Shown here: piece by piece, positions 24,077 through 31,010 of the stretch | Numbering within the stretch: the first letter of the stretch is position 1 | How the letters are laid out: each line of letters starts with the position of its first letter | DNA from: Macrostomum lignano | Lineage: Eukaryota | Reading direction: 5' to 3' | Assembly: GCA_002269645.1 (NCBI GenBank) | Contig: NIVC01001892.1 | Location: 1 to 64,000 of the forward strand | DNA length: 64,000 bases | Notes under the pieces: generated by a model | Seen by the model: the letters and a program-made list of their open reading frames with translations, nothing else | Told to the model about the DNA's origin: nothing | The model's database searches: none | Translations under genes and position numbers: made by a program

Positions 24077-25050
24077 GCATCTCAATCCCTACATGTACTT
24101 TGATCCCTGCATCTCAATCCCTACATGTACTTTGATCCCTGCATCTCAATCCCTACATGTACTTTGATCCCTGCATCTCAATCCCTACATGTACTTTGAT
24201 CCCTGCATCTCAATCCCTACATGTACTTTGATCCCTACATCTCAATCCCTACATGTACTTTGATCCCTGCATCTCAATCCCTACATGTACTTTGATCCTT
24301 GCATCTCAATCCCTACATGTACTTTGATCCCTGCATCTCAATCCCTACATGTACTTTGATCCCTGCATCTCAATCCCTACATGTACTTTGATCCCTGCAT
24401 CTCAATCCCTACATGTACTTTGATCCCTACATCTCAATCCCTACATGTACTTTGATCCCTACATCTCAATCCCTACATGTACTTTGATCCCTGCATCTCA
24501 ATCCCTACATGTACTTTGATCCCTACATCTCAATCCCTACATGTACTTTGATCCCTGCATCTCAATCCCTACATGTACTTTGATCCCTGCATCTCAATCC
24601 CTACATGTACTTTGATCCCTGCATCTCAATCCCTACATGTACTTTGATCCCTGCATCTCAATCCCTACATGTACTTTGATCCCTGCATCTCAATCCCTAC
24701 ATGTACTTTGATCCCTGCATCTCAATCCCTACATGTACTTTGATCCCTGCATCTTTATCCCTACATGTACTTTGATCCCTACATCTCAATCCCTACATGT
24801 ACTTTGATCCCTACATCTCAATCCCTACATGTACTTTGATCCCTGCATCTCAATCCCTACATGTACTTTGATCCCTGCATCTCAATCCCTACATGTACTT
24901 TGATCCCTGCATCTCAATCCCTACATGTACTTTGATCCCTGCATCTCAATCCCTACATGTACTTTGATCCCTGCATCTCAATCCCTACATGTACTTTGAT
25001 CCTTGCATCTCAATCCCTACATGTACTTTGATCCCTGCATCTCAATCCCT
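24077..25050. repeat. 32-bp minisatellite, left part (interrupted by the LINE)
   Basis: Unit gcatctcaatccctacatgtactttgatccct, about 30 copies. Confidence 0.96.
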
Positions 25051-25141
25051 TACTTACTTACTTACTACTGACGGGGGGCGCAGGCGCCGCGAATAGGCCG
25101 CGAGGCCCCTATCGCAACCCCAAGGTAAAAGAGCACAAGGA

Positions 25142-28100
25142 TTAGCCTTGGGGGTGCGCCCAGTCCCCGCCAGTAGTCGGCAGGTCCGCAGTGGAGGCAT
25201 CGGCGACCCTCATCCGGCCGGAGTCCCGGACGAAGGCGCGGAGGTCTCGGATATTGTCCGCGGTGGTCAGCTCGTCCATCCGCTGGGGGTGGCCGAGGTA
25301 TTTGTGCCGCGCCTTGTTGAAGTAAGGGCAGAAGGTGACGTGATGCTCCGCGGTCTCCTCTCCTATGCCACAGAAGGGACAGGTGGGAGGGCAACCGGTT
25401 TGCAACGATATATGTCTCTGGAAGAATCCGTGGCCGGTTAGGACCATGCACATCTCCCTGAGGTCGGTTCTGTTAAGCGAAATCAGATAATCAGAGACTT
25501 TCCTGTTCAGGTTAGGCATGGCAGAGCGGCTCTGCCTGTACTCGGTGCAGCTGTTCCAGTGGAGCTGGTGCTGCTGATGGAGCCACCTGTTGATATGGCG
25601 GGGGACTTGCGACCTGGGGGTGGGTAGCCTCATCAGACGGTGGTTGCCGTCTGGGTTGCTGCCCTCCTTGGCGAGAGAGTCCGCGAGCTCGTTGCCCAGG
25701 ATGTTGCTGTGACCAGGTGTCCAGATAATTCTAATCCTGTTAAGGACTGAGAGAGATTGCACACTGCGGTGGCATTGAGATACTGTAGCAGCGGAGATAT
25801 TCTCAGTGGTTAAGGCCTTAATAGCAGCTTGGCTATCAGTGTAGAAATTAATGTCAAAATTATTAATGTTCGCCTGAAATAGTTGCTGGGCACACTGCTC
25901 AATGGCGCAAATTTCAGCTTGGAAAACTGAGGTGTTCTCACCGAGGTGCAGACTTTCCTGGAGAAGCATCTTACCCTCGTGGAAAATGGCAATACCTGCT
26001 CCAGCGCGGCCGTTGAACAGCGAGCCGTCGGTGAAGCAGTGAATGCCCTGGCTGCGCCGGTTCACACCGACATCCAGCGGAATGTTGTCTCGGCCAGGGA
26101 TGGCGGTCTTGAAGCCCCTCCTGATGTTGAGGGCGGGAGGTCGACTATCCACATTGCCCAGGTCCATGTGGATGTTGTTAAGGTCGCGGCGGACAAAGTC
26201 CATATGCGGGATTAATGTTTTCATTGGCATAAAGCCAGAGGGCGCGTTATTTAACGTTTTATCTCTGATAAGCCGGGAGGCAGACTTCATAGCCTCCGCC
26301 CTAATAAATAGGTGAAGCGGAGGTAGGTTAAGGATAGTGTTCAGCCCCTCGTAAGGGGTGGACGGGTACGCACCTGTGATGGCACGGCAAATGCTGCCCT
26401 GAAGCTGGTACAGCCGCTGACGGGCGGCCTTCTGCTCCAGCACGCTAGTCCAGATGAGACTCGCGTATGTGATACTGGGCCGGATGATGCCGGTATAAAT
26501 CCAACGGACCGTTCTAGGCGAGAGGCCCCAAGTCGGCCCGATGGCTCTGCGCAGCTGGGCAAAGCAGCGTTTTGCCCGACCGATGACGTTATCAAGGTGC
26601 TTCGTCCAGCGCAGGTCATGCGTTAGCGTCACACCGAGGTATTTGACCTCCTTCTTGAAGGGGATGTTTCTGCCATAGACAGTGAGGTTTTTCATCTCCC
26701 ACTTACGGCGCTTGGTGAAAACGACAGCGACAGTCTTAGTGACGCTGATTTTTAGGCCATGCTGTGTAGCCCAGTCGGCCGCCTTGTCGGCGAATTGCTG
26801 CATCAGGTTGCGCAGAGTGGCGGGGTCGGGTCCGCTGACGACCGCGGCAACGTCATCGGCGTAGCCCGCCCTGGTGATACTGCTGGGAATGTCAGCGGTT
26901 AGAAGTTCGTCCATGACGAGATTCCAGAGAAGTGGAGTTAGCACGCCACCTTGCGGGCCGCCTTTCATCACCGCCCGGGTGAGGGTAACGCCCATAAGTG
27001 TGGATGTCACAAACCTTTTGCGGATCATAAAATAAATCCAGCGAACAATGCTGTGTCTTACATTCCTGCGGGAAAGAGAATTTCTGAAGGAGCGGAAGAG
27101 GACATTGTCAAATGCTCCTTCGAAGTCAACGAACAACCCGCAAGCGAGTTGTTTGCTAAGGATGGCACTCTCAATTTTGGAGGTAATGGCGTGGAGAGCA
27201 TGCTCAGTCGTCCTCCCAGGCTGGAAGGCGTATTGGTACTTACTGACAGGGTCGGAGCGCAGGTCGCACTCTCGAAGCCTCCACAGGATGAGCCTCTCCA
27301 TCAGCTTAACACAAAAGGAAGTGAGGCTGATGGGCCGGAAGGATTTCACGTTGGTGTAGTCACCCTTAGCAGGTTTCGGGATGAACACGACTCTGGACAT
27401 TCTCCAGATTGTGGGAATGTAACCTGTGGTATAACAGTCAACAAGCAATTTAGAGAAAGAATCAGCAAAGTTTTGCAGCTTTAGCGCCTCCTGCAGGATA
27501 CAGGGGGCGATATTGTCAGGGCCAGACGATTTATACGGTTTAAAAGAATTTGCTGCCAGCTGGAGTAGCTGGGGGTGGCGCACTGCTGGAAAAGCTTGTG
27601 ATCACAAGGCCTGTGGTCATCGACCACGTACTCCGGTTCGTCAACCTGCGGAAAGCAGGTGGAGAAAAGAAGATTTAGCGAACCTTCGGCACTGGTAGTG
27701 TAGTTACCATCCAGGTGCAGAAGGGAGTTACACTGAGCTAGCGTGTCGTGCCTGAGAGTCCTGACCAGCCGGGCTGTGGGGTGTTGCCCTTCCAGGCCGG
27801 CGCAGTAGGCTTTCCAGGTGGTCTTCTTAGCCCTTCGGATAGCACTTTTGTACATCCTCAGAGCAGAGTGGTAGTTCTCCCAATCCTCTGGGGTATTCGA
27901 GCCGTTTGCGAGGCGTTGCAGTCGGCGGGTGTTTTTCTTCATGCGAGTGAGCTCTTGACTCCACCAAGGAGAGTATTTCTTCCTGCAAAACAGCTTAGGG
28001 GCGTTAGCGCGTATGGCGGTGTTTAGGATCTCAACGAGGGAGTTGCACCGATGCTCAATGCCAGGGAGATCCTCGCTGGAGTCCGGTAAGTTGGCTTCGG

Positions 28101-29882: not shown

Positions 29883-30429
29883 GCAGAGTAGGCTGAAATG
29901 GAAAAACTGAAATGTAGAAAAGAGGGGGGTAACCGCTCGGGGACTGGATATACCCCAGCCAGCTCCGTGGAGCTACCCTCTGCCACGGTAAACAGCAGAG
30001 AAGCTTTGGGTTGCCGTCTTATCCCAGGATTGCTCCCAGGCGAGGCTCCGGCAGGCCCCCGGTCCACACTCTGCAAGATCAGGGGGCGGGAGGCCGGCTG
30101 CGGGCTTGGGACACAGGCGCCAGGTCGAGTTGACAGCCGACGCCCGAGCCCTCCCCCACAAGAGCGGCCCTCGAGAACCCGTGTGGTACCAGTTGCAACT
30201 AAGGGCTGTCGATGGGTAGTTGGCGCTTAGCCAGCAGCCAACTACTTAGCAGCCACCTGCCCCGCAAAAAAGCAGCAGGGGGGATCCGTCCCCCACCAGC
30301 AGACCAAGACGAGGAAGCTAGCCGCTTCCACGCCAGGCCAGAACGAAAAGGAGGGGGAAGAGCCTCCTCGAAAAACGAAAAGCTGGCGGATGTCACAGAG
30401 TCCCTCGGTTTAAGTTGCCGTTTGCCCCC

Positions 30430-31010
30430 CATCTCAATCCCTACATGTACTTTGATCCCAGCATCTTTATCCCTACATGTACTTTGATCCCAGCATCTTT
30501 ATCCCTACATGTACTTTGATCCCTGCATCCCAATACCTACATGTACTTTGATCCTTGCATCTCAATCCCTACATGTACTTTGATCCCTGCATCTCAATCC
30601 CTACATGTACTTTGATCCTTGCATCTCAATCCCTACATGTACTTTGATCCCTGCATCTCAATCCCTACATGTACTTTGATCCCTGCATCTCAATCCCTAC
30701 ATGTACTTTGATCCCTGCATCTCAATCCCTACATGTACTTTGATCCTCGCATCTCAATCCCTACATGTACTTTGATCCCTGCATCTCAATCCCTACATGT
30801 ACTTTGATCCCTGCATCTCAATCCCTACATGTACTTTGATCCCAGCATCTTTATCCCTACATGTACTTTGATCCCTGCATCTCAATACCTACATGTACTC
30901 CCTGCATCTCAATCCCTACATGTACTGGTAATTTAATCCCTTAATCTTGATCCCTACATGTACTTTGATCCCTGCATCTCAATTCCTACATGTAATTTAA
31001 TCCCTGCATC
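30430..31010. repeat. 32-bp minisatellite, right part
   Basis: Same unit resumes directly after the LINE 5' end. About 18 copies, degenerate at the right end. Confidence 0.95.

Follow-up and report, generated by a model that had tools for sequence, protein, structure and literature searches.

A 64,000-nucleotide stretch of Macrostomum lignano DNA (contig NIVC01001892.1 of assembly GCA_002269645.1, positions 1 to 64,000; hereafter the window) carries on its minus strand, at positions 25051–30429, a 5,379-bp retrotransposon lying inside a tandem array of a 32-bp minisatellite. Probably this element is a recently active non-LTR retrotransposon (one without long terminal repeats) of the I group that entered an intergenic minisatellite by ordinary target-primed reverse transcription, with no special targeting of the array. 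No such targeting is needed, because nearly half of the local DNA is tandem repeat, where insertions are harmless and likely to persist.

The features expected of a non-LTR retrotransposon are all present: an apurinic/apyrimidinic endonuclease (APE) and a reverse transcriptase (RT) encoded in the second open reading frame (ORF2), a 3′ tail, and a target-site duplication of 11–13 nt. Long terminal repeats are absent, neither end of the element being repeated in the window. The open reading frames, the Pfam matches and the junctions bear out a first-pass annotation of this DNA, which had described a full-length APE-type long interspersed nuclear element (LINE) with RNase H in a single minisatellite. 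A literature search returned nothing on M. lignano LINEs or on the 32-bp minisatellite.

Insertion junctions

The target DNA is built from the unit TGCATCTCAATCCCTACATGTACTTTGATCCC, as defined by Tandem Repeats Finder. Its left part (24076–25050) comprises 30.5 copies with 98% matches, and the right part of the same minisatellite (30430–31015) comprises 18.3 copies with 89% matches, its unit variants degenerating toward the array edge. The array fits the consensus as far as position 25050, where it reads ...CATCTCAATCCCT, and it restarts at 30430 with CATCTCAATCCCT. Phase analysis identifies these two occurrences as the target-site duplication, with one copy at the 3′ tail of the element (25038–25050) and the other at its 5′ end (30430–30442). 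The duplication, (C)ATCTCAATCCC(T), is at most 13 nt long and is given as a range of 11–13 nt because one nucleotide is ambiguous at each end: the C may belong to the terminal G run of the element, and the T may belong to the tail.

On its sense strand the element starts with GGGGGGCAAACGG and ends with ...CCCCCCGTCAGTAGTAAGTAAGTAAGTA(A). The plus strand of the target continues with TAC after CAATCCC, and on the element strand the target reads GTAGGGATTG, both as the first-pass annotation had stated; the same holds for the stop of the array, the element of about 5.4 kb, the restart of the array with an 11–13-nt duplication and the short (GTAA)n tail.

Two relatives from metagenomes, L076 and L024, have both junctions present. 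They carry clean duplications of 13 nt (AACATTCAGGAGA) and 11 nt (AACATGGGGTT), respectively, in non-repetitive DNA.

Copy number and age of the family

The best protein matches to the element are M. lignano UniRef entries, at 95–100% identity. About 35 M. lignano gene models contain pieces of it; mapping to the window covered 26 of these, leaving out nine further models, and gave identities of mostly 90–100%. The non-element parts of the 26 mapped models match nowhere in the window, so these models derive from other loci. The family also has copies that are more diverged (P0138, P0140 and P0142). From the many models at such high identity we conclude that the family is multicopy and young, its youngest members being very recent.

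Seven different downstream sequences are spliced to the 3′ part of the element in these models (P0012, P0013, P0014/P0132, P0015, P0016, P0123 and P0124), and in several cases (P0013, P0015, P0016) the fusion partner is an ordinary gene. In P0123 the continuation is a peptide with a period of 23 aa; back-translated, it corresponds exactly to a 23-bp unit, ACTGGATGCTACACCGGTGTCAG, which bears no relation to the 32-bp unit. The immediate flanks of the fused copies are unreadable, as the tail and the array have stop codons in all frames and the 5′ untranslated region (UTR) is closed in the frame of the first open reading frame (ORF1).

In exact look-ups neither the ORF1 protein of the window nor P0001 is recorded as a gene. 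The exact proteins of ORF1 and of the upstream frame of ORF2 are absent from a collection of 15 billion proteins, and a 25-nt word from the 3′ UTR and a 30-nt word from the array had zero exact matches in genome and viral contig collections. A short C-terminal protein query, directed at contigs near the 3′ junction, recovered one uninformative model.

The chimeric M. lignano models (P0012–P0016, P0123, P0132 and others) arise where a cryptic donor of the element, following ...DSGRMR, is spliced to adjacent genes or to translated minisatellites. Their names can mislead, examples being 'DUF1559', 'WW domain' and 'RNA-dependent RNA polymerase'. At another locus, seen in P0132 (residues 1054–1239), a diverged sister element (49–67% identity in translated frames) has its 5′ part just upstream of a copy of the family, an arrangement suggestive of LINE insertions that are nested or adjacent.

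Insertion-site preference

Several points weigh against an ordinary, untargeted insertion. In a tandem array of 32-bp units a 12-nt duplication is formally equal to a 20-nt deletion (modulo 32), and of 32 random phase offsets about 3 would yield an overlap of 11–13 nt; by itself the duplication is weak evidence in such an array, and it gains weight because the duplications of L076 and L024 (13 and 11 nt) are clean and lie in unique DNA. Only one copy of the element can be read together with its immediate flanks, which leaves room for a motif preference at the nick. Periodic, minisatellite-like neighbours are found in three of the fused models (P0016, P0123 and P0132), and these neighbours are as compatible with a genome rich in repeats as with a mild repeat preference. 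Finally, the gene-model fusions are spliced predictions, which show the neighbourhood of a copy and not its insertion site.

One alternative, unlikely though we consider it, is that the element has no sequence specificity and its copies nevertheless accumulate preferentially in intergenic DNA and tandem repeats, either through escape from purifying selection or because the open or unusual structure of the arrays is nicked more easily. The periodic peptides beside the three fused models would fit such an enrichment, as would the tight bracketing by arrays of the FHA-BRCT and galactosyltransferase genes of the window (described below), which makes the neutral landing space mostly repeat. Three of about ten contexts, however, is not above expectation for the M. 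lignano genome, and the fusions of P0013, P0015 and P0016 to ordinary genes place several copies close to genes as well.

A stronger form of preference had been put forward as a possibility in the first-pass annotation, namely that the endonuclease recognises the minisatellite sequence itself (around GTAGGGATTG, or CAATCCC|TAC) and inserts there specifically. Such behaviour has precedent, TRAS and SART elements inserting specifically in telomeric repeats, and Waldo and Mino in microsatellites. The single copy does lie inside the array with a clean junction, minisatellites occur near some other copies (P0016, P0123, P0132), and the top match of the APE domain among solved structures is the endonuclease of the telomere-specific TRAS1. 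That match is uninformative on specificity, however, since among solved structures no LINE endonucleases other than those of TRAS1 and R1Bm were matched. A single landing in an array is likewise uninformative, because tandem repeats make up 45% of the window outside the element and simple and tandem repeats 15% of the M. lignano genome (PMC5730564); chance alone would give such a landing 15–45% of the time.

The junctions and the remaining copies also argue against specific targeting. About 48 identical sites are available in the array and one is occupied, and neither blastn nor tblastn detected a second copy or fragment of the element, truncated or otherwise, in the 64-kb window, which holds more than 30 other arrays. 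Other M. lignano copies adjoin at least seven different downstream sequences, as judged from the neighbourhoods in spliced gene models; the only adjoining minisatellite whose unit could be worked out, in P0123, has a different, 23-bp unit; and the relatives sit in unrelated unique DNA. Known target-specific APE lineages belong to the R1 and Tx1 clades (PMC4640811), and ORF1 of the element lacks the CCHC knuckles listed for the type I ORF1 of R1 (PMC4120745).

Pairing between tail and target had also been proposed, with the target TAC complementary to GTA of the tail. This fails, since TAC is on the 3′ side of the nick and hence outside the primer: the left junction reads CAATCCC-TTAC-TTAC..., not CAATCCCTAC-TTAC. 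A junction of the form CCC-TTAC puts the nick after CCC or CCCT, so that homology between primer and tail amounts to one T at most. Similarly, the description of GTAGGGATTG as a TTAGGG-like motif holds for the pentamer TAGGG, which it has in common with the telomeric repeat, and for nothing beyond it. We conclude that a minisatellite-specific family is unsupported, and specific recognition of the array appears very unlikely.

That two separate 32-bp arrays were joined through the repeated element by a long-read assembler is hardly credible: repeats do make the M. lignano genome hard to assemble (PMC5730564) and the single frameshift of the element lies in a homopolymer, as is typical of long-read errors, but both junctions are exact, the phase offset of the array is the one expected from a duplication as long as those of relatives, and unit variants such as ...GATCCT are present on both sides.

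Coding regions of the element

All features of the element described here and below are encoded on the minus strand. ORF1 (28959–29882) specifies a protein of 307 aa, with relatives at 33–41% identity. It matches no Pfam domain and has no CCHC zinc knuckle; its translation contains only three cysteines and no CX2CX4HX4C motif. A single-sequence AlphaFold2 model, whose predicted local distance difference test score (pLDDT) of 46.6 is too poor for a fold search, alternates strands and helices, and with low confidence ORF1 could possibly comprise two RRM-like modules. Relative to the copies in P0023, P0025 and P0127, ORF1 has nine additional residues, STSTPATGA, at aa 46–54 (~29715–29745), a difference that reflects either an in-frame 27-nt indel or the splicing choice of those gene models.

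ORF1 and ORF2 meet at the sequence TAATG (28957–28961), in which the stop codon of the former and the start codon of the latter share one base. A similar UAAUG stop/start overlap has been described for SART1.

ORF2 is distributed over two frames. The upstream frame (27481–28959; 492 aa) contains the APE-type endonuclease at ~28195–28860 (Pfam Exo_endo_phos_2, 9e-23). The downstream frame (25142–27583; 813 aa as listed) contains, in order, the RT at ~26624–27382 (aa 68–320; Pfam RVT_1, 1.3e-30), RNase H at ~25658–26044 (aa 514–642; Pfam RNase_H, 3.4e-13) and a C-terminal CCHC motif at ~25328–25381. The YADD motif of the RT is present, with A242, D243 and D244 conserved, as are C735, C738, H747 and C752 of the CCHC motif.

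The sole break in the reading frame lies between the APE and RT parts, at a run of five C residues (27571–27575) where intact copies require six. Four other copies (P0001, P0002, P0137 and P0141) cross this position without a change of frame, and P0137 and P0141 carry the equivalent ...CA(T/S)... at the frameshift point; overlapping tblastn segments also mark the break. The loss of one nucleotide in the C run may reflect either a genuine mutation or an error in sequencing the homopolymer. The copy in the window is full-length but not intact, with this single frameshift in ORF2.

Untranslated regions and tail

The 5′ UTR (29883–30429; 547 nt), which starts with GGGGGGCAAACGG, includes a block of about 70 nt at 29945–30015 (…CAACCCAAAG…CTGCTGTT.ACCGTGGCAGAGG.TAGC…GGGTATAT). 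This block is ~85% identical to positions ~150–225 of the relative L001, despite a protein identity of 55%, and the remainder of the UTR is unalignable. The block may act as an internal promoter or as an RNA element.

The 3′ UTR (25070–25141; 72 nt) contains a GGGG...GGNCC...CCCCCC block that, in an alignment, is common to relatives at 52–58% identity. RNAalifold predicts that the block folds as a hairpin of 15 pairs, four of them with compensatory changes, whereas the single-sequence folding z-score (−0.74) is not significant. The block is a candidate hairpin for recognition by the RT. It is followed by the 3′ tail, AGTA(GTAA)3GTA on the element strand (25051–25069), which has stop codons in all three frames.

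A search of the element for a 5′ ribozyme or other RNA found no Rfam family, the only hit being a sub-threshold snoRNA match (E = 0.67), and nowhere in the window was there a gathering-level Rfam match.

Comparisons with known elements

The presence of RNase H downstream of the RT in an APE-type element is the hallmark of the I group, which consists of Ingi, I, Nimb, Loa, R1, Tad1, Loner as well as Outcast, all sharing the order APE-RT-RNase H (Kojima and Jurka, PMC4640811). Among solved structures, the endonuclease matches that of TRAS1 (1WDU, 8.9e-18) and that of R1Bm (2EI9, 7.9e-10), and no L1 endonuclease was matched at E≤1, although L1 ORF2p is in the PDB. For the RT the matches are distant ones to L1 ORF2p and R2, in a solved set that holds just L1 and R2 RTs. 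Because the matched endonucleases are of the R1 clade and the L1 and R2 RTs only distant, sequence comparison separates the element from L1 and assigns it to the APE-RT-RNase H assemblage listed as the I group.

The label LOA-like, applied in the first-pass annotation, is a plausible candidate, the domain order fitting the whole I group. Members of the LOA clade (LOA, Bilbo and TRIM in Drosophila, Lian in Aedes and CiLOA in Ciona) have two ORFs with APE-RT-RNase H in ORF2, as here, a separate ORF1 in front of such an ORF2 being an LOA feature that is not exclusive to LOA. RNase H is found in all known LOA elements (PMC2790886). The APE domain of the M. lignano element is closest to R1-clade endonucleases, and MGEScan groups R1 with LOA. 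In contrast to the LOA clade, the element has a flatworm host, an ORF1 without a CCHC knuckle and a (GTAA)n tail.

With the I factor, its clade and the I group at large (I, Nimb, Ingi, Tad1, Outcast and Loner) the element shares RNase H after the RT (PMC4640811) and a C-terminal CCHC motif. Further points of likeness are the duplications of 11–13 nt and a short simple-repeat 3′ tail instead of poly-A. The tail of the I factor is (TAA)n. The type I ORF1 of I, R1, Jockey and Tad1 consists of an RRM followed by CCHC knuckles (PMC4120745), whereas the ORF1 found here is knuckle-less.

Resemblance to the R1-clade elements (TRAS1, SART1, R1, Waldo and Mino) lies in the APE domain, which is similar to the TRAS1 and R1Bm endonucleases, and in the insertion into repeated sequence. 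The element differs from the target-specific members of that clade in that its ORF1 is not of type I, with RRM and zinc knuckles, and in that its RNA 3′ end could form one T:A pair at most with the nicked target, in place of multi-nucleotide pairing. The seven different downstream contexts of its other copies are indirect evidence against a recurrent target.

The closest relatives with DNA are the metagenomic elements L001, L002 and L083, at 52–58% ORF2 identity. Their gene order is the same as that of the M. lignano element, they conserve the 3′ UTR block, and they too end in microsatellite tails, although their tail unit is GAT, as (GAT)n, rather than GTAA; two of the three contigs stop inside the tail. 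ORF1 of L001 and L002 is homologous to that of the element and likewise lacks knuckles, and L001 also has the conserved 5′ UTR block. Among 46 more distant metagenomic relatives (31–40% identity) whose match reaches the C-terminus of ORF2, 19 have a 3′ simple repeat, with AATC, AAT, ACAT, AGA, ATCT, ACT, ACCT or AAG units or poly-A, followed by unrelated flanks.

Proposed course of the insertion

By analogy with established target-primed reverse transcription, we infer the following order of events. A bicistronic RNA would be translated, ORF2 probably by reinitiation at UAAUG, and the ORF2 protein would bind the 3′ UTR hairpin and the tail in cis, the conserved hairpin probably positioning the RT. 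The APE domain would then nick the plus strand of the window after ...CAATCCC(T), and the 3′-OH at the nick would prime cDNA synthesis, with the RT copying the RNA from a start within the (GUAA)n tail. A second-strand cut 11–13 nt away would give rise to the duplication, and RNase H may remove the template.

Surroundings of the element

An uninterrupted ORF of 1,320 aa at 17835–21797 on the plus strand carries an FHA domain at its N-terminus and BRCT repeats at its C-terminus, and is directly bracketed by two different 21-bp minisatellites (16832–17813 and 21808–23433). On the other side of the element, a galactosyltransferase (PF01762) is encoded on the plus strand at 32282–34494 in two ORFs, 32282–33103 and 33877–34494. 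The gap between them is filled by a 35-bp minisatellite (33123–33856) and looks like an intron made largely of tandem array.

TTAGGG-like cores occur in several arrays of the window (184–7795, 44174–44470 and 44791–45206). They include a 7.6-kb array with 282 copies of a 27-bp unit, AGCCGGGGGCAGATTAGGGTCAAAGAC; other units with such cores are GGGTTGGGGTTTAGGTTATG and GGGATTAGGTTTGGGTTG. An AT-rich near-palindrome of about 1.5 kb at 49105–50621, whose arms (49105–49807 and 49918–50621) are 90–93% complementary and separated by a spacer of ~110 nt, may represent an inverted duplication or an element of the foldback type.

Implications

If the APE domain did recognise a motif around ATCCC|TAC in the 32-bp and perhaps in other M. 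lignano minisatellites, for which we see very little likelihood, the element would be the first LINE specific for minisatellites, and its lineage would be a target-specific one that belongs to neither the R1 nor the Tx1 clade. Were a shared target shown genome-wide, it would supply an APE-type enzyme with a new specificity, of interest for targeted insertion. As an ordinary insertion, the element is a clean example of insertion anatomy. Its description helps repeat annotation, because many M. lignano 'proteins' in UniProt are chimeric models built on it, and for a model organism of regeneration it contributes a recently active LINE family with well-defined limits, whose ORF1 is knuckle-less and whose tail is (GTAA)n.

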